Shown here: positions 17,161-45,490 of the stretch, in pieces
Numbering within the stretch: the first letter of the stretch is position 1
Layout: every line of letters begins with the position of its first letter
Source: Asterias rubens
Taxonomy: Eukaryota
Length of the DNA stretch: 64,000 bases
NCBI RefSeq assembly: GCF_902459465.1
Contig: NC_047074.1
Span: 1,984,001 to 2,048,000, forward strand
Direction of reading: 5' to 3'
Program-made: the position numbers and the translations under genes
Notes under the pieces: model-generated
What the model was told of the DNA's origin: nothing
Databases searched by the model: none
What the model saw: the letters and a program-made list of their open reading frames with translations, nothing else

Positions 17161-18143
17161 TTCGTTGATACTTTTTGTTTTAATATTATTAATTTTACCC
17201 AAATTAATATGTGATCTGTTTGTTTGCTTGTTTTGGGGGGTCTTTGTTTATTTGATTGGTTATTTATTTATTTATTTTTTTCTTCTTCTTCTTCTTGTTC
17301 CTCTCAATATCATTCCTCCTACCGACATTCATTTTGTTTCTTAAGACTTCGTACTTTGACCGACTCCGGTCTCCATTTTGTGTTAATAATTAAGTGAATT
17401 TATTCTCTTAAAAACGTTACTGGTGTTTCTCTAAGGACTAAATAAGTGGTGCATTCGGTGAAAAGGCAGGGCTTCATCGACCCCCCCCCCCCCCCCCCCC
17501 CCACCCTCTTCGGTCACTCTTGTAGATGTAGATAAAACAAAAAAAGTTAATCTTAAAATGAAAATGTCAATGCGTCGATAAAGTTTTGTCGACTCATTCT
17601 TTGACTCAAGTTTTCATTCGCGTTGATTATTCCAACCCCCACCCCCCCCCCCCCCGAAATCACAAGCTTGCTTAATTTCACGATGGATTTTATGGGGAAT
17701 ATAGAAGAACTTTGCCAACCCTATCGCCAGCCCCAGTGCACTCACTCCTCCTACAAACCATTTACTAAACAAAACAGTAGCACTCTCAGTGGGCATTTCA
17801 TGCCTTATAGATGATCAAACAGCTGACATACCAACGCCAACAAAAAAAATCGACTCCAAAGTTGCGTTCACCCCCAAGTGATATACCCTAACTGTCAAAG
17901 TTGTATATGGAAGTCGTCTATCTACCACCACCGGAGGGACACGGAGTCTCGGCGGAGAGCCTCCGGTTCTAGCCGCCTTGAGCACCCAAACCCCGCCACC
18001 CGTAACTGTCAAAACATACAACACGTATAGTATCGCTTAGACCAAACTCCCCCCTTTCTGTCACACAACTAACGCGCGCTCGAGCTACCATTCCACGCGA
18101 GCTACCCTCAACGACTGTTCCGTGTTTACGAGTCAATCTAGCC

Positions 18144-21100
18144 ATGCACGTAAATAATTGTGTACGCCGCCAACCCCAATGCATGCCTGTCAAAACGCAA
18201 GCCGCTCGCTTGTCATAATTGTGACGGTCTGATGGCATGAATCACGATGGTCCGTAATGTGTTTACAGCATACATTTTTTTATAGGGGATGGTTTTTTTT
18301 TTGCGGCTGGGGAACGAACAAGTGCAGGGTGAAAAATAAATGACGGGTAGACTTTTAACCGTACGCTGTCCACATGAGTGCGTTAAACTTTACCAAACCT
18401 GAACAGAATACCACAATGTTAAATTGAGAATATAAAATTAGCTGTTGCAAACAACTTACCAACAAATGGACCCGATGATTTAATATAAATGCAAAATAGT
18501 TAATTGCCTAACGTTTCGACCCTAGCAGACATTAACTATTTTTTGCACAATCTTAAATTGAGTTCTCTTTCAGGAAAGAATGCAAAATCAATGTTTTTTT
18601 TTTTTGTTTTTTTTTAAAAGCCTTCTACCATTTGCGGTTCGTTAGTTTACTCTCTATACGCGCTTGTACGTAAAAATATCTTCACCTTTAAAGTGCCGGT
18701 TCGTTGCATGTGAACAACCCCCTTCAGTTTGCGGCCTGCCGATTTCTACCTTAGTCACATTGAAACTTGAAATAAGCAATTAATAAACCGTTATACAAGT
18801 CAGTTAGGGTGACACGCCCACAAAATATTGTCGTTCTGTACTTTGTCACTGTTTATATTTTACAAACTTTAATATTTAAATATCAATTTCTTTCAACTTT
18901 GTAATTTTGTGCTCAATGTGTGTTGGATGGGTACACCCCCCTACCCCTTATATATTGTGTTTTCATTGTGTTTTGGAATCTCATGGAATTCTCTAAAGGA
19001 TTTTTAGGAGAGATAAGCATGTGCAAGAGGAAGACTGGTGTGTTTTGGAAGTATGGGAACATCGGGGGGGGGGGCACACTCTACCACAATATCAGGCACT
19101 ATATGAGAGCTCGTTGCATATGTTCATTTTGTATCGCTGGTGTCTTTCTTTCTCAGACTATTGGTGTCATGCTTATCATGTCAAGCTTCATATCGCTGCT
19201 CATCACATCTTCGCTGGTAGCCGTCACATACGCAACACCATCCGGCTTAAGAAGACCACGCAATGGTAAGACATTATTTTTTCTTAATAACACAGTTAAG
19301 AAGTCATTTTGTTTTGACGTGAATATTTTCTCTTTTTTCCATCCCGACCTCATGGCTTTTCAGTTTTATTGGAGGGTATACAGTGCGCTCCCGCTGGCAT
19401 TGGCTTTCCCCGTATAAAAGCATTGGATAACTCAAAATAATTTTTAGCATAACAACTTAATTGGTAACGAGCAGTGAAGAGCTGTTGGTAGTATAAAACA
19501 TTGTGAGAAACGGCTCCCTCTGAAGAAACGTAGTTTTTTTCAGAAAATGGTTTCTCACTCAAATATCTCAGGCCTGAAGCCTTACTTCGACGACCAATTT
19601 AGTCAACATTTTCACACGATTTATTATTAATTTATGCATTATGTTGGGATACACAACATAAAAATACTGGTCTTTGACAAATACCAAAGGTGTCCAGTGC
19701 CTTTAAATATTGCCGGCTTGCGGGTTACGCTAAAGTTCATTACCCTTAAGTAACGGCAGATTGTGAAATCCACTATACGTTCCATCCTGTGTTATACTAC
19801 TATTGCAACAGGTTGGTTGGGGTGGGGTAGGGCACTTCCTCCATAGGGTTAGGGGAGATGGATGTGCGAGGATGGTCTATCACACCCAGGGTCTGACGAC
19901 CCATCAATCAACCTGTCATCTCACTCAGAGATGTGACAGTCGCTATTGAAACCCGTCCCTCTGTGTGCTATGTGACGAATCACAGAAAATCTCTCTCTCT
20001 GTTCAACGTTAACAATTCTTCCAAGACACAAATCCTAGTCGATGTAAACATAAAAATGAACAACAAGAGAGTGGTAATTTAGTGTTGTCTCCACACGTGT
20101 GTAAGGCTTCTGGCTACAGACAAATAAAGAAAAAAAACGGACACAAAACAACACCAGTCTTGTGTCAAAACATCATCTTTAAAAAACTTTAACAATGGAC
20201 TACCAGGGGTGATGGGGCGGGCCGTTTCGAGAGCGCTTTCACCCGGGGACATTGTTGTCCGTGTTGGGGTCTTTTTACCATGTTGGCTGCTCGGTGTCTA
20301 GTGGCGGGGTAACTGGTGACCAATTGTCGCTCTTGCTCAGTGTTTTTGTTGTAATGACACACGACGGAGCAGAAAGGGGTACTGTTGGAAGGAACCGGAC
20401 TGGCTGGAGACTGGGTCTCATGCTGGGTGGAGCGGGTCTTCCTTGGAAGAGGGGAGACCACTGCCGGGGAATCGTTTAAGCGGAAAGTCTTCCATCATTT
20501 TTATTTTTTCCAAGCAATTGACCTGGGAAAAACAAGTTAGTGGTGAGATGCTCTGGAATTTTGACTATGTACCACAAAGCTTGTCACCCCAGTTTAAAGT
20601 CGGCGTAACTACTATACATATCCGTCTTTAAACTTTCTTAACTTCAACAATAACTATCATGGTTTGACGGCGGTTGTGTATATTTTTCTTTGCTCAACCC
20701 AAAAATATTTACAAGTTTCCCTTGTGTTTTGTTACATCAAAACTGTTTGACACTGCAATGTAAATAATATAATAAATGAATAAATAATGAATTTCTTAAA
20801 AAACATATTTTAACATAGAAACCAATCGATTCAATCATCACATTATATTGAGCAACCCAGGGTTGAATAACTGTGCGTAGTTTTCACAGCTAAAGCCACT
20901 GGACACACGTTTGGTAATTATTACCAAAGACCATTTCTCACTTGGTGTATCCCAACTTATGCATAATATACAAACATGTGAAAATTTTTACTCAATTGCT
21001 CATCAAAGTTGCAAGAGATTTTTGCAATTTGTGATTTAAGTAAGAAATTACCCCTTTCTTGTAAACCACGTTACTTCATAGGGAGCCGTTTCTCGCAATG

Positions 21101-24100: not shown

Positions 24101-25604
24101 CGACAATTTCAATTACAAGTATTTTTTCTTCGTTCTGAACCATGTCCACAAACCTTTGCAGCGCATAGTCGTTATTGCATGTCCTGGAATTTCGTTGTCC
24201 ATTGTCCCTGCTCTACATCTTCTATAGCGATAAATAATGACATGAATTTGAACTATTTTCTCTTCCTATACACCCGGTGTCCACAGATGATGTGTGTAAC
24301 TTCGGCAACGCACAGTACGCTGTTGGCGATAGCTGGCACCCATACCTCCGACCCAACGGGATAGACTACTGCATACTGTGCTCGTGCCACGCTGCTGGGC
24401 AGGTACGGTGCGACGGTAGGACGTGCCCCCATCTTACCTGTACGTATCCCAGGAGGATACCTGGACAGTGCTGCCCGACGTGTGCATCAGGTAAGGTGAA
24501 CAAAACTAACTGAAAGAGAGATTTGAAATAGGTCAAATTTCGGTTACAGTCATGTTTATCCGGTAAAATAAAAAGCAAACTGGAAGAGGTAGTGGTAAAA
24601 TTTCCGTATTATCCTGCCATCCTTTTTTACAAAAAGGGAATAATATTTCATTTTGATTAATTAGATACTATTTTATTGCATACCAAATGAAAAGTAGGTC
24701 AGGATACGAAAACTTTTCAGAGAGAAAAATGTCCGCATGCTGCCAACACTTTTTCATTATTTACTCAAAACTGAGATCATATTCCTTTTCTTTTGGTAAA
24801 AATGAGTGACAATGTGATGGCAGGATACGTTATCTTTCCCGTGGCTTGTTAAAATGCTTACCACTTTTTCAATGTTGCTTTACGCAGGGTATGAAACAAC
24901 AACAGAACAACCGATGACGTCACCACAGCAATGTCAGTATAAAGGCCTGGAGTATCACCACGGTGCTATGTTTTCAGCGACGGATATTTTCCGATCAAGG
25001 CGAGAGGACCAATGTGTTCAGTGCAGTTGCTCGGTAATGGTTTATAGCAATCCTGCCATTGTTTTTTCTTCTTATTATTCTTCTTCTGTTCTTGAGAAAT
25101 TAAAACACTTTATAAAGGGTTTTGATACTTGTTGTACCGTCCACAGATTTCCATTAAACATAACGGCTTAAAGGTTATGATGAAATAAAGCTTTCCTTAA
25201 CTATTACCTGCTGTCTGTGCTGAGGTGATGTAGTGTTTGAGAAATGAGTAAAGCAAGTCATGAAAACAATTGTCTTATTAGACACAAAATATATTACCAT
25301 GTACAACGTTACGCGACTCTCTTAGAAACATTTCTCTGTGATTTTTATTTTTTTCTAAAAAACTTGACGACTTACGAAGCTGAAACTTTTACAAGATACA
25401 TACATTTTCATTCACTGATTTGGAATTATTTTCATGGCCCAAAACTTGATCGAAAAGAGGTATCAAACCCATTATTACGAGCTGAAACTTTAACTGCTTT
25501 AATTTGTCTTGTAACATTGCTGTTAAAAATGACCTTGTTTTTAGGTTTATATAGCAATCGTGTTAGTAACGGTCTTGATTATATATATATATATATATAT
25601 TATT

Positions 25605-25635
<31 letters not shown>

Positions 25636-28600
25636 TCCAGAGTGGGCGAGTGTACTGTGCGTTGAGGACGTGTCCTGCCTTACCGTGTGCAAACTCAGTA
25701 GTGCTGCCCGATTCATGCTGTCCCGTTTGCGAATCCACAGGTAGGTGAACTTCTGATCGCAGCGGCCATCTTGTTTTACGATACCATTAATACTACTAGT
25801 AGCTTCTTATATATAGCGCATATCCGTCACTCAGTGACGCTCACGCTTTAACATACAGCATTTTCCTGAAGGGTATTGGGACGTTTGAATTATGAGACCT
25901 TCTCCTTTAACATAGCACCATGTAGTGTTTTACAAGCTGCTGTGGTGCAATATGCTGCCAATCAAACCAGGAATACTGGGGCGAACCCCTTCTCTGTTTC
26001 GATAAGTGCACTGGGTTACTTTACGTGCGTTACACAACACACGGGACCAACGGCTTTACGTACCATCCGAAGGAAACAGCCTCATGAATAAGTGTCTTGC
26101 ATGTGTCATGACTGGGACTCGAACCCACACTCTGCTGATCAGAAACATTAGAGTTTGAATTCGGTGCTCTTAGTATGCATCTGAAGCATACGAAGTAATG
26201 CAACAAGGGTGTTTTTTCTTTCATTATTAGCCATGAAACACCATCAATGTACATTTACTTTACTTTCTTTATTTGTTGCCAAAGCTACGGAGGAAGACTA
26301 CGAAGATGAAGACCTTACTGGAGGAAACAATCTCCACGGCTCAGTCGAAATATTACCTGACGAACCGTCGACTGAAGGATCGTTCCCAGAGAACACTGCC
26401 ATAGTGCACCCAGCTGAAGAGGACGATGTTAGAATATCCGAACTCGATCCCAGCCGATATGGTGAGTTTAATGCATTGTTCTCTTCCCATGCCGACCATC
26501 AATTTTCTATGGTAATTGTAATAAAACAAAAAGTCTGTGAAAGTTTGGACTCGATTGGTCATCGAAGTTGCAAGACAATGACATTCATGACAAAAAACAC
26601 CCTAAATTGTTGCATAACTTTGTGTACTTGCTCATTTAAGTGAGAAATTACCTCTTTCTCTAATACCACATTACTTCAGAGGGAGCCGCTTCGCACGATG
26701 TTTTATACTATCAACAGATATCCGTTACTCGTTACCAAGTAGGTTTTTTGGCAACAATTTTTTTGAGTAGTACCAATAATGTCCAGTGCCGCTTAATAAA
26801 CACAATAGAAGGAAAACAAGAGTGTTGATCCAAAGTTGTTTCATCTCCCCCTTTTTCTTTTTCTTTTCTGAGTCACCTTTACGAGCATTGTCGGTCAAGC
26901 TGTCTATACACAATAAACTCCCGACTGACCAAATATTTTCCAGAAAGTCAGAGGGAGCCGTTTTATTGCCCCAGGAGGCGGTCTTGGGAAATCAGAAGCA
27001 AGCAGCGAATCATAAATATTTATTTGCTCTTTGGGGGGGGGGGTTCCTCATTTTGGATTTCTAATCATCATGAAGTCATCATAGCTTACTAAGCAGAAAT
27101 GAGCAAGACGCCTGTCACAAATTGTATATTATGTGACATAATATTTTGGCTGGTAATCCTGTTATGGTAAGCGTGAATATAAGGTGCTTAAACCTGGTAT
27201 TGTGCTTAAAGCAGCTCTATGAAATTAGGTCCAGATTTCATCCACTTGTACACTAACAGAAAAACAAAAATGCAAAAGAAAAATAATATTTCACCTCAAA
27301 GGAACAGCATTCTATGAAACTGTGCCTAGGCTAGATTTTACCAACTTGAACACAATATCAGAACATTTCAACGACAAACGACAAATAATATTTCAACTTG
27401 CAGGAAGTAGCATTCCATTTGGACCTAAGCATCGTATGATTAGCGTCATACCCTACTTAAGGGTACGGCACGAGTTACCTGACTAACGCATTTTGACAGC
27501 CTGTCCCAGAGCGAGAATTTTGAGGTTTCATGGGGGGACGGATGCGCCTATCACCCGGCGCGCCTCAGCCGCAACTGACACTAAATAGAAGTGACGGGAA
27601 TAAAAACCTCAGGGAAAAATTCTTGATTTTTCAGTGTCGATTTTATGCCCCTCAAAAAACAACATCAACACCAAAGGAGTGGGCCCCGGGGATTAAACCT
27701 CAAACCCCCTCTAAGTAAACCGAGAACAAACAATGTGTCATTCGGAATGATTTAGTGTTTATACGGAAATCAGATCTCGAGTTTTATACAGATTCTTTTT
27801 AAAGAACTGTGTTATTAAGGCAGTGGAAACTATTGGTAATTGTCTAAGACTAGCCTTCACAGTTGGTGTATCTCAACATTATGCATAAAATAACAAAACC
27901 TGTGAAAATTTGAGCTCAATCGGTCGTCGAAGTTGCGAGATATTAATGAAAGAAAAAACACCCTTGTCACACGAAGTTGTGTGCATTTAGATGCTTGATT
28001 TCGAGACCTCAAATTCTAAACTTGAGGTCTCGAAATCAAATTTGTCGAAAATTACTTCTTTCTCGAAAACTACGTTATACTTCAGAGGGAGCCGTTTCTC
28101 ACAATGTTTTATACTATCAACCTCTCCCCATTACTCGTTACCAAGTAAGGTTTTAAGCTGATAATTATTTTGCGTAATTACCAATAGTGTTTTGTTTTTA
28201 AACCATAATTGGTAAAACAATTTAAAAACGGCTGGCTGTAATGTTAAAGTTTTTTTACCCTTTGTAGATCAACTTTTTAGCTATGACATGAATCCCTACT
28301 CTCTGTGGATTAATGTATCTATGTTTTGTTATAATTTATAGTTAATTTGCCTGTGGAAGTTTCAGCTATATATTATAAGTCGTCAAGTTTTTGAGACAAA
28401 AAAGTGAAAATCACACAGCAATGTTTTCAGGAGAGTTGCATAGCACTTTGTAAATCTTAAAATAATGTTCGCTCACTGAGAATTTTTTTTTTTAATTTTT
28501 TTTACTAATGTCTCATAAACTACAGCACCTTAGCCTTCCCCTTAAATTTCCAAGCATAAAAATTAGTCACTGAAATTGCCTCGACGCATATTAAAATAAC

Positions 28601-31600: not shown

Positions 31601-34600
31601 AGTTTTGTTGTTATTTGTTAGGCAATTATTTTATGTACAGTGAACATCTGTGTAAACGGTTTTGCTTTATCATGTGGTTTTGGTCCATTCGTAAAACAGC
31701 GAGCTGTTAAACAGAAGTTTGTATACTTATATAATTATTTGATATGCAGTGAACATCTGCATAAACTGTTTTTGCTTTATCATGCGGGCTTGGTCCACTC
31801 CTAAAACAAAAGTGGGTGGAAGGGCGACACTTGGTCCCGGTGAGGATCTGCCAGGAGCCCCCGGTGCTATACCAGGCTGAGCCTGGTTGTCAACGCGGAC
31901 CATGTGAGGCCCTGGCAGTGCCGTCTGCACGGAGCCGAGCATGTGTTCCCGGTGATCTCGTTGGAGCCAGGCTGAGTGGGGGCAGGGTTTACGAGTCGGC
32001 ATTGTGAAAAGAGTTTTCCCCTCCCTGTGGTATCGCTCTTTAACTGTCCTGGGCCCAATTTGATAAAACTGTTAAGCAGAAAATACTGCTTAGCAAACTT
32101 CTTTCATAAGGAATATTTTGTGTGGCACCAGTTGCCGCAATGTAAACTTTGTTGATTTATGGCTGGTAAACCAGTTTCTCTAATCACAATTTGTCTGTGC
32201 TTAGCAAGTATTTGTGCTTACAGCATTTATGCAGCCCAATTTCATTGAGTTAAGCAGAGAATAATACTTAACAATGTTATACTAAGCAAAAAAATTAAGC
32301 AGGGCACAGTCCATGGTACAGTCCCATACTTATACTTCCTTGTGACGTGGTATTATAGCCGGTAATAAACCTTCCTATTCTTCTAAGCATAATCATTTTG
32401 TGCTTAGCTACTTTTTGTAACATAAATTATAACGACTTGTCAACAAGTCTATCACCAGTCCCTCGCCAGCATTAGGGCAAAATCATACTATCCAGGGATC
32501 GTAGAGACAGGATTAACAAGGTGTTCTTTAAACACCACGCCCATTTTATGCCAGGTATCTTTGATAGCCCAAGACACATGCACGGCGCCGGACTACCATT
32601 ACCTCGGCTCTCGGTTTGGTCGCAATGTATTTGCGTGAACACGAAAATGCAAAGTTCAAAAAAGGTTGTTAAGATTTTGTCATGAAGTCAATAGCCAAAA
32701 CCAAACTTAGTTTTCCATCTTGAGAAAAACTACGATATCCGAGAGAGCCCACAAGATTTATATGAACATCACTTTTAAGTCTTAGCAACTGCCATTATTA
32801 ATTGGTATCGGCTTATGCCATTTCCTAATTAAAATAATGTCCTAATTAATAATTAAGGTGAGGTCCCACCCACGTTTTAAAATACACCTTAATTGTACCT
32901 GTGCAAAGTCTTCTTTTCTAAGTTTAAAGGCGCTGGACACTTTGGTAATTACTCAAAATAATATATTAAAAGGGTTTGCATACACCTTCATTCACAGTGA
33001 GTAGGCATTCATACCTTGGTCAAAAAACATGATTTTACAAAAAAGGTATCACAACCCTTTATAACAACAACTTATTTGGTAAACGATCAACGGAGAGCTG
33101 TTGATTGTAGAAAACATTGTGCGAAACGACTCCCTTTCGAAGTAACGTAGTTTTGAGAAAGAAGTCAATTCTCACTAAAATATTTGAATCTGAGAAAGAC
33201 TCTGCAATAATTATGCAGTATGGAAAGATGCTTTTGAAATGGCTCATTGTTCGACACATGATTCTTAGCAAAGCAAGAGTGTATGGGGGTGCGAAGAAGC
33301 AGATAGCCTGGTTCCAAACTCAAACATCAAGAAACGAGGAACTAGGTCGGACACACTGGTGGTAGCACAATTTTTCCATGAAAACTTTAACTGCATTCGG
33401 TTCTGAAAAATCAATAAACAAAAAACAATTCTGTGCGTTGTGGTGTCACAAAGAGTTCAAGATCAGATGTAATAAGAGTCCATCATATTCTAAGGAACCA
33501 CGATGCCGGATCCATGACAGTTCATAATCAAAACTCAAACAACATTCCTCGAATTTCTAGAAAAATATGACTCAAGGCGGAACGCATAATGGTCCATTTA
33601 TAACATAATATTAGGCGCCGAAATGAAATTCTTGAAATAGTTATGTTACACAATGACAAGAATCCATTGTACGCTCGTCCTGGGATCGTGAATGCATAAA
33701 CAAAAGAGTTGTTTAAGAGGGTTGTATGAGTGGGGTCGGGGGTCAAGTGGTGCGGTCTAGAAGAAATACTGCCTTATTTATTGTAATGCAAATATTGGCG
33801 AAGAATTTATGTTCAGAGTGTGTGGTGGGACTGTAGTGTTCATCCTTGCAGAGTGTATAGGGTTAACGACCTAGGCCTATGCGGCACCTTTTTTTAAGGG
33901 GGGGGGAGCACGTTTGTCAAATTTGCGAGTTGGTGGTACGTTGGTAACCGAGAGGGGATTTAGAATCATGCATTGGGAAGATTATCTCATTCCTTCCTCC
34001 CGATTCGTTGAAAGTTGTTAGTTGGTACCCTGCTTTATTATACGAAAATTTGTCTTTGAATAGCCGGTCTATAATAATATTATTTATAAGGAAGCTGATT
34101 GATGTTTTCTGCGTGATCATTTGTGTTGCTTTATAATAATTATAATCTATTGATCTATTTTTGTTGACCAACAGTTTGCGAGTCCAACGGCAAAACATAC
34201 TTCGAAGACCAGAGCTGGCATCCGGTACTGGTACCTTTCGGCAGAATGGAATGCATCCTGTGCACTTGCAAGGTAAGATAGGATAGATGAGACAGGGTAC
34301 AAGATTGTTGCCCTGCCTTCTATATAGTGGTCTTTTTCGAAACCACGGCTTCTGCTCCAAATTCCGCTCCGGTTAGCTTGGCCCTGCGGTTGTTTTGACA
34401 ATATTGCACGTTTTTTGCGTATACGTGCTCAGGGCTTCAGACAAGAGGACGGAGCCTGAAGCCGAATCTGAAGCCGAAGCCGTGGTTTCGAAGAGGGTCT
34501 TTATTTGCTTGCCTTTTTCAAATCCAATCGTCATAAAGTTTATACAAAACGGTAAAACTACAAACTGTGGGTGTTTTTATTTATTTAATTATTTACTTAA

Positions 34601-37300
34601 GTAATTTATTATCATGTTGGGGAGCTGTTAGGAGTTTTTTTATTATTAATTTTCATATTTGTTTTAAATACGTAGGATAAATAAGAATAATGTCTGACTC
34701 CAACCCTGAATGTCTTCTTTTTTCTTAACAGAGAGGAGAGGCTGTATGTGGTAGGATGAGATGCCCAAGTGAGAACAGCTTGCCATGTGCGAATCCCATA
34801 CAGCACAGGGGATCCTGCTGTAAAGTATGCCCAGGTGAGGAACATTTCACGGTTAATTTTAAAAACTCGATGTGAGTATACGGATGGGTAGTAGTTTTAA
34901 CTGTTCATGGATTTCCCCCCCCCCCCCCCCCCGTCGCGGCATAGTGACATATGAAAACACAGCTATAAATCATGTTATTGTTTTCATTTTCAAAAAACAT
35001 TTTTGCCAGTTTATTGATTTGCTCTGGTAAAAACAGAACTTTTACACTGATCGAAACATGGTGCTTGTCTATGTTGAAAGCCCAATCAAATATGCTTATA
35101 CATTTAGAAAAATTAAAATGTGACCAAACGTCGTTTGCAAAAATACAAAGTTTTTGGAAAATAGTTTAGGTCGGAAAATAGACTCTAAAGTGTAGATTCA
35201 TGGATAGAACGTTCCAGCATTATACACGAATCTACACTTTCTCGTCCATTCTCCATAACAAAAAATAATCTATTGGCAGATATACCGACACAATCGACGG
35301 GGTCTTCCGACGACGGGCCGTCCGAGGACATCGAGGGTATCGATGAGGCTGCCCTCTGCCTCCGTAAGACGGAGAAAATACTCCTGCATGAGTTCGTGCC
35401 GTACTTGGTGGAGTCGCCGGACACCTTGCAGACGTTTCGATTCGTAGTTGAAGACCTGGACGCTGGGGTCTTTGAACATCATTTGTGGGAATTCAGAGAT
35501 GGTAAATAATGAACTGGTATATTAATTAATTAATTAATTAATTAGTGATTGATAAACAGATTTGAGCCTCATTTGTGGGAAATCAGAGATGGTAAATAAT
35601 GAATTATTCTCATTAACTAAATTAATAAGTGATTAATTAACAGATTTGAGTATCATTTGTGGGAATTCAGAGATGGTACATGAACTTATTTTTATAAACA
35701 AAATGAATTAGTGATATTAGTCATTTGTGGGATTTAGTCATTTGTGGGAAGGGAGAGAGTGAAGTAGTGAACTATTCTAAAAACTAAATTAATTCAGAGA
35801 TTGTAAATGAACTATAAACACATTTTTTTAAAGATGGTAAAAATCAATTACTCTTATAAATAAGTAAAATGAATAAGTGATTAATGGAAGATTTTAACCC
35901 CCCAAAAATAAAAATGAACTTGTAACTTTAAACTTTAATAAAGCAACTAAAATAAAAAGACTAACAAATAAGTGCAGTTTCGTTTTTTGTAAGAAAAAAA
36001 AAAAAAAAAAAATGAGACGCGTCTAACATCAAGAAATAAAAAGGGTTCACAACTTGAATACTATGTGCATTTTGTTTCTAAATTATTGTTAATTAGGAAA
36101 TACAGTCGAAATCTTGTTGAACTTTCATATTTGGTATGGAACTAAAGATGTTTTCAGAAAAAGTTCACATTTTTTTATGTTAATTTATGCAGGACTGATT
36201 TCGGATTTTCAAATTGAGCCAATGACAGACGAGGACTTCCAAAACAAACAGGAAACCAATAGAACGGGCTGGTTCCAACTTGCAGGCGCTTCAACACACC
36301 GTAAGTAATATTACACAATATAGGTTTTCTCGGTCAATTTCGGAAAAAGAGCAGCCAATTTAACCACCAAGCTATTTTTTTTCGCGCAAAATCGAATGCT
36401 ACTCAAAAGAGTCATTCGATTTCGTTTTGGGATTAGTCAAATGTAATGTTGCGTCATTCGAATAAACAAAATAATCATTCAATTTAACAATTCATCAGAG
36501 CAGCATTCAAATTCGCAGACGCTTCTTGAGGCGTGTGTGTCACGAAAATGAATGACGCTACGCTAAATTGAACAGAGTGCTAAAAGAGTTTGACTCGACC
36601 AAAAACGAAATTGAATGGCCGAATTCTGAATTTGAAACGCAGTATAACAACTGGAGATGCAAAACAGCTTTGATTTGAACGCATGACCATGAAATTGACT
36701 GCTCATTTGCCGAATTTGACCGAGAAAACCTATAGTAATTACTTTAGAATGTTTTTGTTTTAATTCATGCCTTATTGTCGTCTTGATTGTTGTTAATTGT
36801 TTATTTTTATCATTATGTCCTGTCGCTGACAAAGTTGCACAGATAACAGAATGCTGCTGGGAATTTTCAAGCTGCCTCCATTCGGCCAGAGCTGAATCGG
36901 TCGCATATTAAATGTCACATTCATTTTAAATGTGTACAGCTTATTTAATTTGATCATGCATCTGTATGGTATGGCCTACTTTGTATTTTGGGCGTTTTTT
37001 GTACGTTTTGATGTTTGCCTATTGTTGATTGTTTGTATTTTTATGTAACTTTAGTATTTTCAGTGTTGCCTTCAACAATTTCTTCTTTTTACATTTTGAA
37101 TGTCCACAGATCGCCTGCAGAAACTCAAAAGAAAAGAGCGCAAACTGGAGAAAAACTGCATCTCAAACTGTCAACGACAGGTCGTTCGACTAACGCGAAT
37201 GCTCAGACCAAGGGCAATTGAAAGAGGAATTGAATGCACCCAGGCACCCGACACAACACCCAGGCAAAGGGGGACACTTGTAGTCCCAACTAGTGGGTGA
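18144..37300 (+). CDS. CHRDL: Chordin-like protein (three VWC/CR domains plus CHRDL-type C-terminal region), about 487 aa
   Basis: Exons: 18144-18149 (tentative ATGCAC|gt), 19157-19265 (signal peptide [22 protein letters not shown]), 24287-24490, 24888-25033, 25641-25740, 26285-26461, 34175-34272, 34732-34834, 35280-35501, 36193-36300, 37110-37300. All junctions are GT-AG and phase-consistent. VWC motifs: [35 protein letters not shown] and [24 protein letters not shown]. Confidence 0.88.
18424..18548 (-). mobile_element. Penelope-like terminal repeat fragment with hammerhead-like motif
   Basis: Reverse complement GTCTGCTAGGGTCGAAACGTTAGGCAATTAACTATTTTGC is shared with 37417-37495 and 39468-39507. 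Flanked by the inverted repeat gcaaaatagttaat / attaactatttttgc. Confidence 0.5.
19420..19702. mobile_element. Kolobok-like MITE
   Basis: Family consensus, ending in gtgtccagtgcct|ttaa. Confidence 0.75.
20894..21198. mobile_element. Kolobok-like MITE
   Basis: agccactggacac ... tgtccagtgcct|ttaa. Confidence 0.75.
21788..23140 (+). pseudogene. Tentative degenerate Toll-like receptor remnant (TIR-like segment about 22640-23140) inside chordin-like intron 2
   Basis: Frameshifted plus-strand fragments follow TLR order: [13 protein letters not shown] (signal-like), [20 protein letters not shown] (LRR-like), [33 protein letters not shown] (juxtamembrane, TIR box 1-like), [63 protein letters not shown]. 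Pattern recognition only. Confidence 0.35.
25790..26155 (-). mobile_element. Near full-length tRNA-derived SINE with conserved central domain (MetaSINE-like)
   Basis: Minus strand: box B GGTTCGAGTCC, central aacccagtgcacttatcgaaacagagaaggggttcgcccc, tail gcgctatataag. The same central domain occurs at 8188-8260, and a head copy with box A TGGCCGAGCGG lies at 29393-29530. Confidence 0.7.
27818..28190. mobile_element. Kolobok-like MITE
   Basis: Family consensus over about 370 bp. Confidence 0.8.
28891..29232. mobile_element. Kolobok-like MITE (AGCCATTGGAC subfamily) nested in another repeat
   Basis: TTAA duplication at 28887-28890 and 29233-29236. The flanks match the uninterrupted repeat at about 4470-4650. 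Confidence 0.75.
35476..35760 (+). repeat. Degenerate tandem repeat derived from an exon end and its splice donor
   Basis: TCATTTGTGGGAA(T/A)TCAGAGATGGTA recurs at about 35479, 35570 and 35653, with truncated copies at 35721 and 35738. Confidence 0.8.
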
Positions 37301-38730
37301 ATTGGGCATCTTGACTCAACTGGTACAAACTTTTAAGACGCAGTTGACAGCAGACTTACCCAGGTAGATCCAGGTAATACGGAGCGCATGTTCTGAAGTT
37401 TTTAGCCTTCGAGATAGACTCTGCTAGGGTCGAAACGTCAGGCCATTAACAATGTTGCGCATTTTGGTTGGTAAGTTGTTTGCAACAGCTAATTCTCTCT
37501 CGTATTCAGAACTCTTATTTACAATTGCAATTTACCTGGTGAGTCTGCTGCCACCTAGCGTTCTTAAGACTCACATTCATTAACAATGTAAAACAATGAA
37601 GCTTCTTTGTGTAGTTCTTGTACCCGCCCGCCTTTTGCCTATTGTCATGGCCAGTCATTTAAATTACCTAACACTATGATAGAAAATTAAAAACACAGTT
37701 TATCCCCAAACGCCCTTCCTGAACTGTGGCCTGGACAAGCTGTTTTTCACAATTAATTCTTAAAGGCCCTGGACACCTTTGGTAAAATGTCAAAGACCAG
37801 TATTCTCTCTTGGTATATCCCAACACAATGCATAATATGAGGTGTAGCTGCGTTAGAAAAGGTAATTGGATGCAAATTTGATGCATATTTGATGACAGAC
37901 TTATAGTACATGTAACATGTGACGTCACACGTTTACAGAAGCGCCACATAGCCCGAACTTCCTGCAGATAAAAGTTGTACACGGCCCATCCAGTGGGAGA
38001 AAAAAATCATGCATTTTACCAACTTTATAGAAGGGAAGTAAGGAGTGTACATTTCAAAACTTGTCCAGCTTGTTTTTCTAACTGTCGAATTAATGTAAAG
38101 TTATTACACAAAATTAACAAGTTTTCATGCAACCAGTGTAGTATCTTGCCTGCCAGGCAAAGCCCTGGAATGTACGAGGTCAGTCACTCTTTTTGTAAAC
38201 AAAAGTTACATGATCCGATAAACAAAAAAGAACAAGGGTGCATTAGTCAAGTCTGCTGCCACCTATCGTTTCAAAAAAGTCATGCACCATACAGAACCCT
38301 AATCTTCCTAATAACGAACGTACTTTGTAAATAGTGAAACTTTCTAGCAAATTGATATGTGTGCATTTCCTAAGTATTATATTTAAAAAACTGGTTGCGG
38401 TATGGGCAACAGAATTTGCGAAGAAAAAAATAACTTTATTTGGCAGTTATCAACTGCGAACATCTTGTACATTAAAATGTTTATTTGTTTTAAAATAAAA
38501 TATGAAACTAACGTTTCAATTAATAATATATGATGATAATATTATATGTATAATACCTTTATGAATATTCATAAGATGTAGAAATGAGATGAATATCATT
38601 CATTTTTAACGAATACATGCATGTTATTTTATATAAACTTATTGTTTACAAGTAGCTGGCATTATTCGGCCAACAGGGTACTGTAGATGGGACAAATGTT
38701 TTTTTCTGTTATCCTTTACCAATCCTGTAA

Positions 38731-39108
38731 AGGCAGCAGACACTTTTGGTAATTGTCAAAGACTAGCCTTCACAGTTTGTGTATCTCACCATATGCATAA
38801 AATAATTAACCTGTGAAAATTTGAGCTCAATCGGTCATCAAAGTTGCGAGGTAATAATGAAAGAAAATAAACCCTTGTCACACGAAGTTGTGTGCGTTTA
38901 CATGGTTGATTTCGAGACCTCAAGTTCTAAATCCGAGGTCTCGAAATCAAATTCGTGGAAAATTACTTCTTTCTCAAAAACTATGGCACTTCAGAGGGAG
39001 CCGTTTCTCACAATGTTTTATACCATCAACCTCTCCACATTACTCGTCACCAAGTAAGGTTTTACGCCAATAATTATTTTGAGTAATTACCAATAGTGTC
39101 CACTGCCT
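38731..39108. mobile_element. Kolobok-like MITE
   Basis: Family consensus with both termini; right end followed by TTAA. Confidence 0.85.
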
Positions 39109-39646
39109 TTAATAATGCAAAGGAGGGGGGTCAAAGTTAGCAGCACATTACTTTGTGCTTAGCTACATGTTGTGCTTTAAAGCAGCTCTATTAAATTGGG
39201 CCCTGACAAAATCAAAGGTTCTAAACAAAAGTGCTTATTAGGGAGAGTTACAAAATGAGTACAAAGTTTGAACAAACTTGTTGTGTAGAGTATCATTTAT
39301 TTCATGTACATATAAATCAAATGAAGCACATGTAGTCATATTTTCTTGATGCTTTCTTGCATTTTTAATTTTGTCCAGGATGACCAGAAATGTTGAACCT
39401 GGTTCAAACTTCACCCGAAGAGCGAAAGTGAAGCGAACCTTGTGTCACAATTGGCCCTCCAGATTACAGACTCTGCTAGGGGGTCGAGACATCCGGCAAT
39501 TAACTATATGTTTATACAATGGCCATGGTATAAATACAAGAAATGCATTGGTCATTTTGGTTTGTAAGCAGTCTGCAACAGCTACATGTAATTCAATTTT
39601 GTAACAAAATGGAAAACAGTGAACATCTGATTATGTGCGCTTCATA

Positions 39647-39799
39647 GGGTCCGTTCATTTAGCTTCCCTGGGTCGTTTCGGTGTGTGGCGTTTTTTTTTT
39701 TTCAAGGACGAACGTGTGCAAATAATTACCCACAATCGTCCTGGAAAAAAAAAACGCCACACACCGGGGTCGACCCAGGGAAGCTAAACGAACGCACCC
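39647..39799. mobile_element. MITE with GGGT(C/G)CGTTC(A/G)TTTAGCTTCCCTGGGTCG TIRs
   Basis: Long inverted arms including ggtgtgtggcgtttttttt / aaaaaaaacgccacacacc. Confidence 0.75.
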
Positions 39800-40513
39800 A
39801 TAGTTTGCTTTCACATGAGGTTTGAACTGGGCTTTTATAAGAAGCAAATAAACACAACTCAGTGTGAAACAAATTATATTAATGCATAAAGGAATGCCAT
39901 TGGTACAAAATGCTTGCTAAAATTTTAGCCAGTGGCAAGACACTGATGTGGGAGAATGGCGACTTGAAAAAGATCTAAAGTATAAATACAACTAAGATGT
40001 GTGCATGATGTATGTGCACAAACTTGTACATTGAATAAATAAAGTATGATACACTGCAGTGAAATGCATATGCACGATTCTGGATTCAATTTATGTAAAG
40101 TGGTTGGTCATGTGAGGTATATACGGTGCCGTGATTGGCCATTACGACATTTGGCAGTTAACTTGTACCTCCAATTGTCATACAGGGTTCTGCCAAGGAT
40201 TTCTTATGTGGTGGAAAATTGTTTTTCCCTTTAACATAACAGTAGACTCTAACCAAAGAAGTACTCAAAATGTATAGCTTTGGATACCATTGTGTTTTAC
40301 TGGTAAATACACAATTGATCATTTGTTGAAATCCTTTGAAAGGAAATTGCAGGTTGTAACTACACAAATTTGGAAACTGTGTGGTGGTCGGAAACAATTC
40401 TGCCAGTGGTGGTTGGAGAATACTGAGTGCAGGGCGGGTTTTCCGGCACAGACCACTGAGGAAAGAACCCTGGTGATAGCATATTGTGCCAAAGGTGAAT
40501 TTTTTTTCTGTTC

Positions 40514-43500
40514 TCATTTTTTCTTAAAGAAACTCATCAGTGATCTTTGCTTTGCCTTCCCACTCCCACTTCCACTTCCGGGCGAGGTCTTTTTCTTACC
40601 CTCATCCTCTCCTCCGTCTGTCTTGGGGGCTCCTCCCTCCTTAGGGCTTGGCTGAGACGGTAACGAGCTGGGTGTGGTCTTTGCGGGCGGGGCCTCATCT
40701 TCACTGGCATCTGTGGACTCACTTTCCCACACCTTATCAGTGACTGATGAATTAAAAAGTAAAATGAAAAATGACCGTAAAGAAAGAAGTGCTTAAACAG
40801 CAACTATACCTGCAGTTTTCTGCATATACTCCACCCCCTGTGGGTTTCAGTCCCACTCAAGCCTGCATGGCCCAACGACCTAAGCCCAGCTTATCCAGTT
40901 TTATCTATGAAAATTTGCCCCAGTTGTTTATTGGAACAAAAATCTACGCCAAATAATTCCCTGAAAGACGAAACCTACCCATACAACCGTCATCATCGAT
41001 AGTAATCTTTTTCTTTAGAACTCTCTTCCGTCTGCGTTTCTTCCCGCTGCTGGGTTGAGCACTCGTTCCGTGGGAAGACCTCTCAGGAACTACTGTCCCC
41101 TCTTCCTCCTCACCATCATCAGAGTCATTCGTCTCCATCGCGGGAGGGGGCGGGGTCGGCGGTATCGGACTGTCTTCTTCCATGTCTGAAACGGACAAGT
41201 TTTAAAACGTAAGAAATCGCAACGAGAAATACACCGAGTTTCGTTGTGTATCTGAGTTAAAACGTTGTGAAGTTTTGTTGTTCATCCAAGTTGTGTGTCT
41301 CCTATGTAAAGGGCACCTGTATGAGGAAATGTTGTAAATTTCCACTGGATCATTTCTAGGACTGATGCACCGTTCTTGAAAGAGAAGTGCACCAAGGCGC
41401 TTTCTCCTTTCTATGATGAAAAGTTGTAAATTACCATTGAGATGTTTCAAGGGGCACCATGGCAATGACCAGGGGCACTGGTTGCCCTGGTTGCCTCTGT
41501 AAATCTTCAGGCGTGCAAATCAAAAGCACATCAAGCTAAACTTACCACTCAGCTCTTCTTCACTCTCGCTACTACTGCTGTCTTGTTGTATGATCCGTCG
41601 TCTGCGTTTTGATGATTGTTTGTTGGTCGTGTCATCTTCTGTAACATAAAAAAAGAATACAGATATAATTAAACCAGGGTCCAGGGAGAAAGATTATTAC
41701 ACAGTGGCATGGTTGGCTTGTGCGTAAAGCGCTCGCCTCTCACCAAGGTAACCCCGGTTCGATTACCGGCCAGGGCCATATGTGAGTTGAGTTGTGCGTT
41801 GGTTCTCTGCTGTGCCACGAGGGTTTTCCAGACCATCCGGTTTTCCTCCCTCGGGAAAAATCAAACACTTTCGATCTTGGCTGTGCTCCGTGGTCATAAT
41901 GGGTTGATGTGGCTGGCAACCAAAGGTGCCCTTGCATGCTTGCTTCTCGAACACGTTGTAGCCGCGTCCTTTGCAATTCAGCTCTAAGCTGCGAGTAAGG
42001 AGAATTAGCCGCCAAAATTATTATTAATATTATACTGAAAGTCAATTTCCTACATCCAAAGGTAGTTCCTAAACCTGGGTTAGCTCGGTAGTCTAGCAGC
42101 TAAAATCACTGGCCTCGGGGTCTGCGGTCCCGTTAATTTCAAGCCCTGCTTTGAGCACCAGACTGCTGATTTAGCTTTTCCTAACTGGGTACGTTCAGTA
42201 GTTTAGGGGCTAGAAGCACTGGCCTCCGGTCCCGTGTTAATTTCAAGCCCTACTTTAAAGGGATTCCTTTGACTTCCTACCTACTTTATACCGAAAACTT
42301 TACTCACCCGAATCAGAATCTGAAATATTACTCTTGGTCGCTTTTCTCTTGCTCTTCACTCCTGCATCTTTCTTCTTTTGAGATGTTTGAACCACAGGTT
42401 CTGAAGGAACAGGTTCTGAAGAAACTGGTTCTTTTGGCGGGGTACTTTCCTCCTCTTTCTTGACCTTCTTGGTTGAGGGTTTGTTCAGGAATGCCATCAT
42501 GCCCCCCTTGGCCTTGCTACTGGGCTGTTGTTGATTCAAAACAACAAAAGGAAAGAAAATACATTTTTTATAGACTCATTTCCTCCGAAAAGAAAAAATA
42601 TAAATGTTGTTCATAGTTTCATCAAATAATAAACCACAAGGGAAACTGACCGAGTAAGTTTTAAATGATTTGGGGTTGACGAAAAAAAAGTTACTAAAGC
42701 AAGATATCTGTTAACCAGGAGGTCGTTGTTTCAATTCCCCCTCTAGTCAATTTTTCTTTGTTCAACCCCAAATCATATAATTTGTATTACGATTAAAATG
42801 AAAAACTGGAATAACAATTGCTGTCCTAAGACCCACGGTATTGAGATGAGATGTTTTGCAATACAAGAATGGATCCAAGTGGTGGTGAAAAAGGTGATTG
42901 AACTTACACCCTGTTTCTTTGAGGTCTCCTGTTTCTGAGTGGCAATCACCTCTTTCGTCTTCTCCTCTGATTTCTCCGAGGAACCCTTTCCGCTCGTACC
43001 TGAGAAAGCTTTGAATGAGAGTTGTCCCTGACCCTTTTTGGGTTTAGAAGCCAGACTCTTTTGCGGCTCCGGTTTGAGATTCTCAATGATGTGCTTCTCA
43101 GCGTTCCCGTTCATCTTCGGTCGTGCTGGAGGGGTATTGGGGGCAGAAGCGTGATCATTGCCTGAGAGCTCTGCCAGTTCCTCTGGAGTTCTTTGTTTGG
43201 CCTCTGTGCATTTGATTGCACTATACCTGCAAAAACCAAAAACAAAATTAAGGTTAGCTTTTAAGGTTAACCAAATTAAGGTTAGCTTTCTTGAGAGAAT
43301 GTTACCAGGCAAAGTAAAGCATTTCAAAATGAAACCTCCTCAACTGTTTTTTAAAAAGTGATGGACAACACAAAGATTTGTGTTCTTGAATTGTGTTGCA
43401 GTCACCAGACAGCCTGTGAAATGTCTATAGAGGGACAGGGTTGCAGGGAAAGTTCACCCCAACAAGAAACAAAAGTAATTAGTTAAGGCACTGAACACAT

Positions 43501-45490
43501 GTTACCTGTTTGGTTGTGTAATATTTTCTTTGATAATCTCATAGTCTGTCATGTAGAGACTGTTGGTGTCTTTCAACTTGGCCTGCTGGACGCTGTAGAC
43601 ATGCTTGCTGAGGACCTTGCTTAGAGACGCTTCTGATTCTATTTAGAATCAAGACAAACAAAGAGTTAGCTTAGCTGATGCAACATTGCTACTGTCAGGT
43701 TCTTTCTGCACACTGCTACACTTTGAACTCTGCTAAACGCAAAACCAACCAATTGAACTCTGCTAAACGCAAAGACAACCAAAGTTTGAAAGCTATGGTT
43801 TCTGAAACAGATGTTTTGAGATAAATGTCTTAAATTGAGACCAAGTATCTGCTCGTCTTAGTTTAAGTAGGAGGCTATTCCAAAGGAGATGGCCAGGCAC
43901 ATGAAAAGCAATGACTACCCCAGGAGTGCTGGAAATGTGGAATGTTCAAGAGCAGGTTGTTTGAGGTGCGAAGCTGTCTGGAAGGTTTGTACACATGAAT
44001 TAAGTCATTGATGTATTCAGGTGATGTGCCATTCAGGGAGTGGAAGATGATAAGAAGAACTTTAAAGATGATGCAGTCTCAAACAGGAAGCCATTGTAAC
44101 ACATGTCAGGTGTCTTGAAACTAAACCTTATGGACTCAAAAAGTCTGTAACTGTTTGTTTGGAACCACCTCGTCACCGCGGTTCAACCGAACACGCATAA
44201 TTTTTGGTTGGGGTTACCAAAACGCACCCTTGCCAGATTGATAAAGTTTCTTCTTCTTTGATTTTGTTACTTACTTTTTAAATTGTCGTCAGACACTAAA
44301 GTAACTATGTTAACTTTGACTCCATTTTCTTTCTCCTCTATACCACTCAATAGGTATGTGACGTTGACTGCTTTAGGTTTTGTCTGTTCAACAAATGTTG
44401 CCAACATCCTAACAAAAGGGGGAAAAAAGGGGGTTCGGGTGAGAAAGCTTCTCTCATGCAATTGTTTGTCAACGACATAGTATGATGTACTCACAAGTTA
44501 GTCAATCGTCTGTGTTTTATTTGATAAAAGATGGTTTTTAAAAGTTCCATTAGATTCATTTTCAAATTTTATATTTCTCCGTTTCCCTCCACTTAGGAAA
44601 CAAGTTGCGTTCACACTTACTGTTTTGCTCTGTTGACGTGCACTGACAATGTCTGGCTCAGCCATCGATACGTCACCTGACAAAATGAAAAATCACATGT
44701 TTAGTTGTGGTCACTGGACATGTGGTCCAGTGGTTTGACTCACTGACCCTGAGTGCAGGACTTGCAATTACAAGGTTGTGGGTTCCGGGCCAAGCAAGCT
44801 GGGCCAATTATGATAGAAAAATAAGTAGGCCCTTAATATTATTAATATTAAAAATATTCCTTGCACCTTTTTCACTTGTAAATAGATTATGTCGTGTTCC
44901 TGATCGCTCACTTTGTACCTTAGAGTACGACTATACTCTACTACGAGAGAAATGTACTACACCATGATAGATGGATAGACATGATAGATAGATAGATGAT
45001 AGATAGTAGTGTAGTTGTCACTGATTATGTAATTTGTTGTTCTGAATCACAATTTTTTGGTTTGTGCAACCTACCATTACCAATTATGTTTGTAAATATT
45101 GGGAAAACCTCTGTTTCATAAGTTCGAATGGAGAAGTGGTGGCAGGATTTGTGTTTACAAATTATAGTAATCCCCCTACCCCCCCCCCCCCTGTCATTTT
45201 GTGCAGGGGAAATTGCTGAACCCGGACATGCCGGACCCCTCCTGTTGACTTGACGCGCGGTGTTGTTTACAGTTACGCAGTTACAAAACTTTCAAAATTG
45301 GAGATAAACATCTTTGATCTGATCAACCCTTCTAATTCAATTGTGTTTCTAAAGTAAAGGTAAGCTCCGTTTATTAACACATTATTATAAGTTACTTATG
45401 CAATTTCGATATAATGTTAACTGTAATTACCACTTTGTCTTCGTCAAACACAAACTCCTCCAAGTTTTCCAAGTACATATCACCCGCCAT
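40514..45490 (-). CDS. POLD3: DNA polymerase delta subunit 3 (p66/Cdc27), about 482 aa
   Basis: Exons (minus): 45490-45431 (MAGDMYLENLEEFVFDEDKV), 44676-44621 (VTYRWLSQTLSVHVNRAK), 44408-44275, 43638-43506, 43226-42908, 42524-42308, 41638-41546, 41185-40979, 40743-40514. Phases are consistent. C-terminal RKRVLKK...DDDGCMVTDKVWESE and PIP box QRSLMSFF. Confidence 0.95.
41703..42030 (+). mobile_element. tRNA-derived SINE (V-domain-like)
   Basis: Box B-like GGTTCGATTACC, then atatgtgagttgagt..ggttctc..gggttttcc..ccggttttcctccc, and a TTA/TAT tail. Confidence 0.6.
43790..44130 (-). mobile_element. L2/CR1-type LINE 3' fragment in POLD3 intron 3
   Basis: Minus-strand translation LQWLPV*DCIIFKVLLIIFHSLNGTSPEYINDLIHVYKPSRQLRTSNNLLLNIP...LWNSL..KLR...FK..LF matches the conserved L2-type RT C-terminus. 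Confidence 0.75.

Follow-up and report, generated by a model that had tools for sequence, protein, structure and literature searches.

Ancestry, gene structure and transcription of the convergent chordin-like/POLD3 gene pair in the sea star Asterias rubens

The same two gene families, chordin-like and POLD3, adjoin in the sea star Asterias rubens and at the vertebrate CHRDL2-POLD3 locus (human 11q13.4; chicken chromosome 1), where the order POLD3-CHRDL2 has been reported for human and chicken (PMC3179935), which raises the questions of whether the adjacency is inherited and what has kept it. We addressed them in a 64,000-nucleotide stretch of A. rubens contig NC_047074.1 (hereafter the window). 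The pairing is real and ancient, yet it is already published: chordin-like2/polD3 synteny has been described across vertebrates and invertebrates, A. rubens included, and traced to the bilaterian ancestor (PMC12425909, 2025), and the same paper uses it to recognize CHRDL2 as the copy that stayed in the ancestral place and the gene of invertebrates as the state before the duplication. What we add are exact gene models for the window, RNA evidence that the gap between the genes is mostly UTR, the pair in three further genomes (Acanthaster, Amphiura and Ptychodera), lineages, both sea urchins among them, in which a 10-kb flank does not contain it, and the finding of no conserved non-coding elements in the gap or the POLD3 introns, which weakens the idea of regulatory constraint. 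The reading that we favor, with a probability of roughly 85%, is that these are two ordinary intact genes, the pro-ortholog of CHRDL1/CHRDL2 and POLD3, that stand tail to tail by ancestral inheritance and are likely kept together by their packing.

With the chordin-like protein of Acanthaster planci (P0003) as the tblastn query, we mapped ten colinear coding exons of the chordin-like gene on the plus strand, from the ATG at 19169 to the stop codon at 37298-37300, with GT-AG at every exon border and a spliced frame that stays open through 478 aa. The encoded protein is 97.5% identical to the chordin-like protein of Asterias amurensis (P0151) and 76% identical to P0003, and it contains three VWC domains, with Pfam matches in the exons at 24.2 kb (43.2 bits), 25.6 kb and 34.2/34.7 kb; three VWC stretches are likewise found in P0151. 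Exon 1 (19169..19265; tblastn with P0003, donor GTAAGA) carries the start codon and a hydrophobic N-terminus that is identical to that of P0151, aligns with the N-termini of both P0003 and P0151, and resembles a signal peptide, which we regard as putative. Exon 2 (24287..24490) holds the whole of VWC1, which gives the 43.2-bit Pfam match and matches the PDB chordin entry 9rd6 (E 3e-23). VWC2 is divided between exon 3 (24888..25033; 73% identity to P0003) and exon 4 (25641..25740; partial Pfam VWC match and tblastn), the acidic linker between VWC2 and VWC3 is encoded by exon 5 (26285..26461; 56% identity to P0003), VWC3 is divided between exons 6 (34175..34272) and 7 (34732..34834), each with a partial Pfam VWC match and a tblastn match, and the C-terminal region begins in exon 8 (35280..35501; 63% identity to P0003); splice sites delimit all of exons 2 to 8. 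Exon 9 (36193..36300) is spanned by RNA contigs of X1, X10 and X12, which cover 36192-36300 and continue at 37110, and this junction (36300|37110) agrees exactly with the model. The coding part of exon 10 (37110..37300) is placed by tblastn, splice sites and the same RNA junction. The original prediction began the gene at 18144, a position that we had to reject as the start codon: its ATG is GTG in Acanthaster, and the homologs place the start at 19169. Position 18144 falls instead in a conserved non-coding block (18102..18172, plus strand), about 1 kb upstream of the coding start, that is 76% identical to and colinear with Acanthaster L001:9376-9444 in a blastn comparison, and may be promoter or 5'UTR. 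An acceptor-like site lies immediately 5' of the ATG at 19169.

POLD3 occupies the minus strand with nine exons, from the ATG at 45490 to the stop codon at 40514-40516. Its exon peptides match, in order, the CDC27-annotated neighbor genes in Acanthaster (L001), amphioxus (L007) and two other genomes (L004 and L005). The coding part of exon 1 (45431..45490) is placed by its open frame and by tblastn and blastn to amphioxus, exon 2 (44621..44676) by its open frame and blastn to Acanthaster and amphioxus, exon 3 (44275..44408) by tblastn to Acanthaster and splice sites, and exon 4 (43506..43638) by tblastn to all four of these genomes and splice sites. The borders of exon 5 (42950..43226) are predicted from the open frame, splice sites and tblastn to Acanthaster; exon 6 (42308..42524) has an open frame, GT-AG borders and a blastn match to Acanthaster, its acceptor being at either 42524 or 42512. 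Exon 7 (41546..41638) is given by an RNA contig of X10 and splice sites, exon 8 (40979..41185) by RNA junctions on both sides, and the last coding exon (40514..40743) by the junction 40979|40743, which, like 41546|41185, agrees exactly with the model. The last two exons match Pfam CDC27 (PF09507) with 34.8 bits (exon 8) and 28.1 bits (last exon), above the cut-off of 24.5. The protein ends in QRSLMSFF followed by KKK. The PCNA-interacting PIP box has the consensus Q-x-x-[LIM]-x-x-F-F, so that this C-terminus is PIP-box-like. POLD3 (Cdc27/p66) is an accessory subunit of DNA polymerase delta that binds PCNA. Gene models and RNA junctions thus bear out the predicted arrangement of a plus-strand chordin-like gene with three VWC domains ending at 37300 and a minus-strand POLD3 ending at 40514, convergent and with no gene between them.

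To which vertebrate gene does the chordin-like gene correspond? In a phylogenetic tree from which BMPER and KCP were left out, the spliced window protein groups with the CHRDL proteins (99/97 support), with chordin CR2-4 as the outgroup, as had been anticipated; within this clade, vertebrate CHRDL1 and CHRDL2 together form a single clade (100/100), outside of which the window gene lies. Grouping the invertebrate deuterostome genes with CHRDL2 to the exclusion of CHRDL1 is rejected in an AU test (p 1.5e-5), and the gene has intron positions in common with the amphioxus, bird and annelid genes. Single window exons gave no Pfam match to the CHRDL C-terminal domain CHRDL_1_2_C (PF19548, cut-off 27); with the nearly identical P0151 serving as proxy for the window protein, the scan gave a sub-threshold match of 18.3 bits, close to the likewise sub-threshold 18.7 bits of P0003, while the Saccoglossus ortholog scored 29.8 bits and a shark protein 177 bits. 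No CHRD domain was found by Pfam in P0151 or P0003. The tree, the AU test, the shared intron positions and the weak match to the C-terminal domain all support the proposal, made in the original prediction, that the sea-star gene is the pro-ortholog of both CHRDL1 and CHRDL2. It is the single sea-star copy, with a predicted signal peptide, three VWC domains, a chordin-like C-terminal region and no CHRD.

The protein resembles CHRDL1 (neuralin/ventroptin) and CHRDL2, which are secreted BMP antagonists, in having three VWC domains, the last of them set off by a long linker, in the lack of CHRD domains, in shared intron positions, and in its size, 478 aa being within the CHRDL range of about 450-500 aa; its C-terminal region may resemble PF19548. 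On the other hand, its identity to its vertebrate counterparts is no more than about 30-32%, and in sea stars the match to the C-terminal domain stays below threshold. By homology, the product is predicted to be a secreted BMP-binding antagonist. It shares with Chordin/Sog a WHP-type motif in the VWC domains; chordin 9rd6 is its best solved-structure match, and VWC1-3 align colinearly with chordin CR2-CR4. Chordin, however, is a protein of about 900-1000 aa in which four VWC domains are combined with CHRD domains, and it is the outgroup in the tree.

The convergent pair is present in seven of the 12 genomes examined, the window included (the window, L001, L002, L004, L005, L007 and L010). Stop-to-stop gaps are 2.5 kb in Acanthaster, 7.2 kb in the ophiuroid Amphiura, 5.1 kb and 1.6 kb in the hemichordates Ptychodera and Saccoglossus, respectively, 2.9 kb in Branchiostoma, and 8.8 kb in the bird Rhinopomastus, whose CHRDL2 and POLD3 likewise converge without an intervening gene. 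In the remaining five (L003, L006, L008, L009 and L011), namely, the sea urchins Strongylocentrotus purpuratus and Diadema, the crinoid Antedon, the hemichordate Glandiceps and the annelid Owenia, no such pair was seen within 10 kb; with a 10-kb flank, a small insertion and a true separation of the pair look the same. A gene look-up returned no chordin-like gene on record for Lingula. Hence the gene order proposed for comparison held in the other sea star, amphioxus, Ptychodera and Saccoglossus, and was missing within 10 kb in the two sea urchins and Glandiceps. One might argue from the five genomes without the pair that the adjacency has no ancestral meaning and is a matter of chance or of independent events in separate lineages. 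However, seven genomes across Echinodermata, Hemichordata, Cephalochordata and Vertebrata share the orthologs, their convergent orientation and the absence of a gene between them, while a given pair of genes would adjoin by chance with a probability of about 1e-4 per genome, taking about 20,000 genes; the phylogenetic spread of the pair already effectively refutes such an origin, to which we assign a negligible chance. The occurrence of the convergent pair in echinoderms (asteroids and an ophiuroid), two hemichordates and chordates (amphioxus and a bird) supports the adjacency as an ancestral deuterostome microsynteny, as originally suggested. The tail-to-tail arrangement was most likely inherited from the last common deuterostome ancestor or earlier and, after the vertebrate duplication, remained with the CHRDL2 copy. 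Compared with the vertebrate locus, the sea-star one has a single pre-duplication copy, equally close to both CHRDL1 and CHRDL2, and its gap spans 3.2 kb, most of it transcribed, versus 8.8 kb in the bird.

The stop-to-stop gap in the window (37301-40513) measures 3,213 nt and contains no protein-coding gene. RNA contigs cover 37110-37445, 37534-38775, 39088-39727 and 39778-40743, and since the intron stretches have an RNA contig depth of 0, DNA contamination of these contigs is argued against. As the contigs span most of its non-repeat sequence, the gap is largely 3'UTR and interspersed repeats; the contigs are strandless, so we infer which gene owns each part. The chordin-like 3'UTR (37301..38775, plus strand as inferred) extends to 37445, where the contig of exons 9-10 reaches 37436/37445, and probably continues to about 38775, the contigs at 37534-38775 matching it in depth in three runs. 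It is followed by an interspersed repeat copy of about 390 bp (38720..39113), which has extreme RNA contig depth and copies of 88-91% identity at 13650-14024, 27817-28190 and 55858-56254. The transcribed stretch 39088..39727 is covered by an RNA contig in three runs, whose depths agree with those of neither gene; a hand calculation for the three runs also found no mix of chordin-like and POLD3 transcripts that fits the depths. A hairpin (palindromic) repeat with high contig depth lies at 39646..39842, and the 3'UTR of POLD3, at least 736 nt long (39778..40513, minus strand), is covered by X1, X10 and X12 contigs that run unbroken from 39778 to 40743 and are spliced to 40979-41185. Scans of the gap returned no tRNA, no Pfam family above its curated cut-off in its two 119-aa ORFs, and, in Rfam, nothing but miRNA-family matches far below threshold (56 bits versus a gathering score of 245) on both strands of the palindromic repeat.

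What, then, has kept the genes together? Tight packing is the most likely reason that we see: the two 3'UTRs would fill most of the few-kb gap, which leaves few places where a break between the genes would spare both transcripts. Such packing does not make the pair unbreakable, five of the genomes lacking it within 10 kb. A stronger version, in which the two genes have common or overlapping 3' ends and a physical or regulatory coupling of the 3'UTRs, for example by sense-antisense overlap or shared termination, has kept the pair for more than 500 million years, seems unlikely to us, even with transcription covering almost all of the 3.2-kb gap. We regard as rather improbable a genomic regulatory block, in which enhancers of the chordin-like gene in or beyond the bystander POLD3 would hold the pair and a break would disconnect them. 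It would account for the pair being kept in the bird despite the 8.8-kb gap, and human skeletal-trait GWAS signals have been assigned to the POLD3/CHRDL2 locus (PMC10167361); our search found no literature that treats rs3824999 together with CHRDL2. Moreover, the pair joins a developmental-signaling gene to a housekeeping gene, like the ancient metazoan microsyntenic pairs described by Irimia et al. (2012), in which unrelated genes of these two kinds stay adjacent across phyla and whose conservation that paper ascribes to cis-regulatory constraints (PMC3514665). In the present pair, however, the bystander POLD3 yielded no elements of this sort. All colinear non-coding blocks between Asterias and Acanthaster in our blastn comparison lie upstream of the chordin-like gene or in its introns 1 and 5, those conserved blocks including 16493-16582, 17876-17921, 18102-18172, 20251-20329, 21373-21469 and 31872-31958, while in the alignable sequence no non-exonic block was found in 37311-40514 or in the POLD3 introns; in blastn against the more distant loci, exons alone align across phyla, and the pair is missing within 10 kb in several lineages. 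Thus the search for conserved non-coding sequence that the original prediction called for succeeded in the chordin-like introns and failed in the gap and POLD3 introns, and the shared regulatory constraint on the pair that it envisaged appears unsupported in these alignments, leaving tight packing of inherited neighbors as our preferred account.

In both sea urchins, S. purpuratus and Diadema, a carboxylesterase gene lies directly downstream of the chordin-like gene. If coupling at the 3' ends were true, this echinoid insertion would be a natural experiment on the uncoupling of chordin-like and POLD3.

The six-frame scan of the window (G+C 33-45%, without assembly gaps) yielded cysteine-rich open stretches on the plus strand at 24241-24510, 25635-25745, 34168-34278 and 34729-34872, all four of which match Pfam VWC; the first also matches the solved chordin structure 9rd6 (E 3e-23). 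Using this first VWC exon in a HMMER search of 1.84 billion representatives, we retrieved many 3-VWC proteins (~450-500 aa) and 4-VWC proteins (~900-1000 aa), the best full-length 3-VWC match being P0003, named chordin-like protein 1 of Acanthaster planci by NCBI. Kielin-like multi-VWC proteins, also retrieved, differ in architecture and are without full-length similarity. Comparison of P0003 with the window by tblastn placed ten exons in colinear order on the plus strand, and the junction search found canonical GT-AG borders in all nine introns. The exons lie at 19178-19265 (P0003-based model), 24287-24490, 24888-25033, 25641-25740, 26285-26461, 34175-34272, 34732-34834, 35280-35501, 36193-36300 and 37110-37300, and the spliced product of 478 aa, open in frame throughout, is 97.5% identical to P0151, the chordin-like protein of Asterias amurensis, and 76% to the Acanthaster protein. 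The N-terminus of P0151 is three residues longer, and the window has a matching in-frame ATG at 19169; since an acceptor-like site lies immediately 5' of this ATG, the gene probably has an untranslated first exon. The original prediction placed the start of the gene at 18144, which we could not uphold as a coding start, since Acanthaster reads GTG there and the small ORF closes after 24 codons. Position 18144 falls inside a 71-nt block conserved with Acanthaster, which is a conserved non-coding element and not the start of coding.

The POLD3 gene on the minus strand starts with an ATG at 45490, which begins a typical POLD3 N-terminus, and comprises nine exons, at 45490-45431, 44676-44621, 44408-44275, 43638-43506, 43226-42950, 42524 (or 42512)-42308, 41638-41546, 41185-40979 and 40743-40514, the borders of exons 4 to 6 being predicted. 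The last two exons exceed the Pfam CDC27 cut-off, and the C-terminus, QRSLMSFF-KKK, is a PIP-box-like motif followed by a stop codon at 40514-40516. The gap between the two stop codons is therefore 3,213 nt long (37301-40513).

We placed Logan contigs from four runs, picked by shared words, on 36100-42000. They span the junctions 36300-37110, 41546-41185 and 40979-40743 in exact agreement with the gene models, and the depth is 0 in all four runs at the intron stretches 36888-37084 and 41222-41418, so these libraries behave as RNA and their coverage is not DNA carry-over. One contig joins 37110-37445 with chordin-like exons 9-10, and coverage of 39778-40743 is unbroken with the POLD3 exons; the POLD3 3'UTR is thus at least 736 nt long, and that of chordin-like measures 145 nt or more and probably some 1.5 kb, as 37534-38775 is also covered, with depths following the chordin-like exons in three runs. 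A further segment, 39088-39727, is covered in three runs with depths of 115, 148 and 174, a profile that fits neither chordin-like (13, 45, 102 in the same runs) nor POLD3 (44, 353, 65) nor any mix of both. The contig breaks in the gap fall at repeats. One is an interspersed repeat of ~390 bp at 38720-39113, with copies at 13650-14024, 27817-28190 and 55858-56254 and many partial ones, the copies being 88-91% identical to one another; RNA contigs contain it in enormous amounts, with word depths in the millions, and it interrupts transcript assemblies in the gap. Another is a palindromic repeat near 39646-39842, in which the stretch 39660-39786 resembles miRNA families of plants and animals on either strand, but far below threshold (56 bits against a gathering score of 245); this is most likely a hairpin repeat or a MITE-like one rather than a miRNA gene. 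The coverage by these strandless contigs, together with the repeats at its breaks, indicates that the gap consists mostly of 3'UTR plus repeats. Neither of the two 119-aa ORFs in the gap has a Pfam match above a curated cut-off, and a tRNA scan of the gap found none. Hence, the claim of a convergent pair with no gene between is borne out for protein-coding genes.

For the gene order in other genomes, we took orthologs as named by their sources and examined their contigs together with 10 kb on either side. The gene calls refer to coding sequence, which for Acanthaster follows from colinear blastn matches at both stop codons. As in the window (gap 3.2 kb), a minus-strand CDC27-family gene lies downstream of chordin-like in Acanthaster (L001, 2.5 kb), Ptychodera flava (L004, 5.1 kb), Saccoglossus (L005, 1.6 kb), Branchiostoma floridae (L007, 2.9 kb) and, next to CHRDL2, the bird Rhinopomastus (L010, 8.8 kb). 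In Amphiura (L002, 7.2 kb), this position is held by a minus-strand 503-aa gene whose 3' exon matches the last POLD3 exon of the window. The convergent pair in asteroids, Amphiura, two hemichordates, amphioxus and a bird supports the proposed ancestral deuterostome adjacency. POLD3 was not found within 10 kb in Diadema setosum (L003), S. purpuratus (L008), Antedon (L009) or Glandiceps (L006), a flank that cannot separate an insertion from a true separation of the pair; no gene was called downstream of chordin-like in Antedon, and a mannose-6-phosphate isomerase (minus strand) lies there in Glandiceps. The genes called within 10 kb in Owenia (L011) are unrelated, as far as gene calls go. Both urchins carry the same 419-aa carboxylesterase directly downstream, on the same (plus) strand as chordin-like (L003:41233-44771 and L008:29680-33591), in the place that POLD3 takes in other deuterostomes, which points to one old echinoid event. 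The outer upstream neighbours differ, being a multicopper oxidase in the window, an ABC transporter in Acanthaster and an MFS transporter in amphioxus; since outer flanking genes are not common to the genomes, the conserved unit is the pair alone.

The maximum-likelihood tree (39 proteins, 461 columns, LG+C20+F+G4), rooted with seven chordins trimmed to CR2-CR4 and built with BMPER and KCP left out, groups the window gene with those of Asterias amurensis, Acanthaster and Amphiura (support 97/92), nested in a deuterostome chordin-like clade that also includes Trichoplax (99/97). Vertebrate CHRDL1 and CHRDL2 form one clade (100/100) excluding all invertebrate genes, and the AU test rejects a grouping of invertebrate deuterostome genes with CHRDL2 without CHRDL1, defined post hoc from the tree (delta lnL 51.9, p 1.5e-5). 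The window gene is thus the pro-ortholog of both vertebrate paralogs, as had been proposed, and corresponds to CHRDL2 by position. Introns at approximately aa 97, 146, 238, 305, 379 and 415 are shared with the genes of amphioxus, bird, urchin and annelid. PF19548, the C-terminal domain of chordin-like proteins, gives a weak match in the sea stars (18 bits against a cut-off of 27) and one above cut-off in the Saccoglossus protein. Source names are inconsistent (P0156, P0003 and P0151): the ortholog goes under chordin-like 1 in Acanthaster and under chordin-like 2 in Asterias amurensis, and the protein named 'chordin-like protein 2 isoform X1' in Cetorhinus clusters with Rhincodon CHRDL1 in the tree.

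Sensitive blastn aligned every coding exon and six colinear non-coding blocks to the Acanthaster locus. The blocks (74-85% identity) are confined to the chordin-like side, namely, upstream of the gene (16493-16582, 17876-17921 and 18102-18172), in intron 1 (20251-20329 and 21373-21469) and in intron 5 (31872-31958, which holds 1-nt indels and is thus non-coding), and are candidate regulatory elements of chordin-like. The same comparison, which covers alignable elements, found no conserved non-coding block in the gap or the POLD3 introns, and alignment to the brittle star, hemichordate, amphioxus and bird loci was limited to exons. Shared regulatory constraint, as originally suggested, and chordin-like enhancers housed in POLD3 thus find no support among alignable sequences. 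On the simplest reading, two genes only a few kilobases apart and with adjoining 3'UTRs would leave few harmless breakpoints.

The gene order KCNE3-POLD3-CHRDL2-XRRA1 is known from human and chicken (PMC3179935), and chordin-like2 was reported in August 2025 to adjoin polD3 in vertebrates as well as invertebrates (PMC12425909, Front Cell Dev Biol), with Asterias rubens, Branchiostoma floridae, Saccoglossus kowalevskii, Lingula anatina and Cryptotermes secundus among the species of its Figure 2. The authors of that paper trace the synteny to deuterostomes as well as protostomes and conclude that chordin-like1 is new to gnathostomes. The original prediction is therefore confirmed in its observation and supported in its interpretation, regulatory constraint excepted, yet was already published; our additions are exact gene models, the transcribed gap, further taxa that carry the pair or lack it, and the negative conserved non-coding result.

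Elsewhere in the window, multicopper oxidase (laccase-like) exons occur upstream of chordin-like at 3191-7175 on the minus strand (Pfam Cu-oxidase_3, Cu-oxidase and Cu-oxidase_2). Beyond the POLD3 5' end, an RRM-domain exon (Pfam RRM_1, 50902-51192) and a long Lys/Arg/Asp-rich open stretch (52971-53852), both on the plus strand, probably belong to a small RNA-binding-protein gene. TCTP-like exons are found on opposite strands, at 59870-60166 (plus, with a Pfam TCTP match) and 62338-62598 (minus, of similar sequence).
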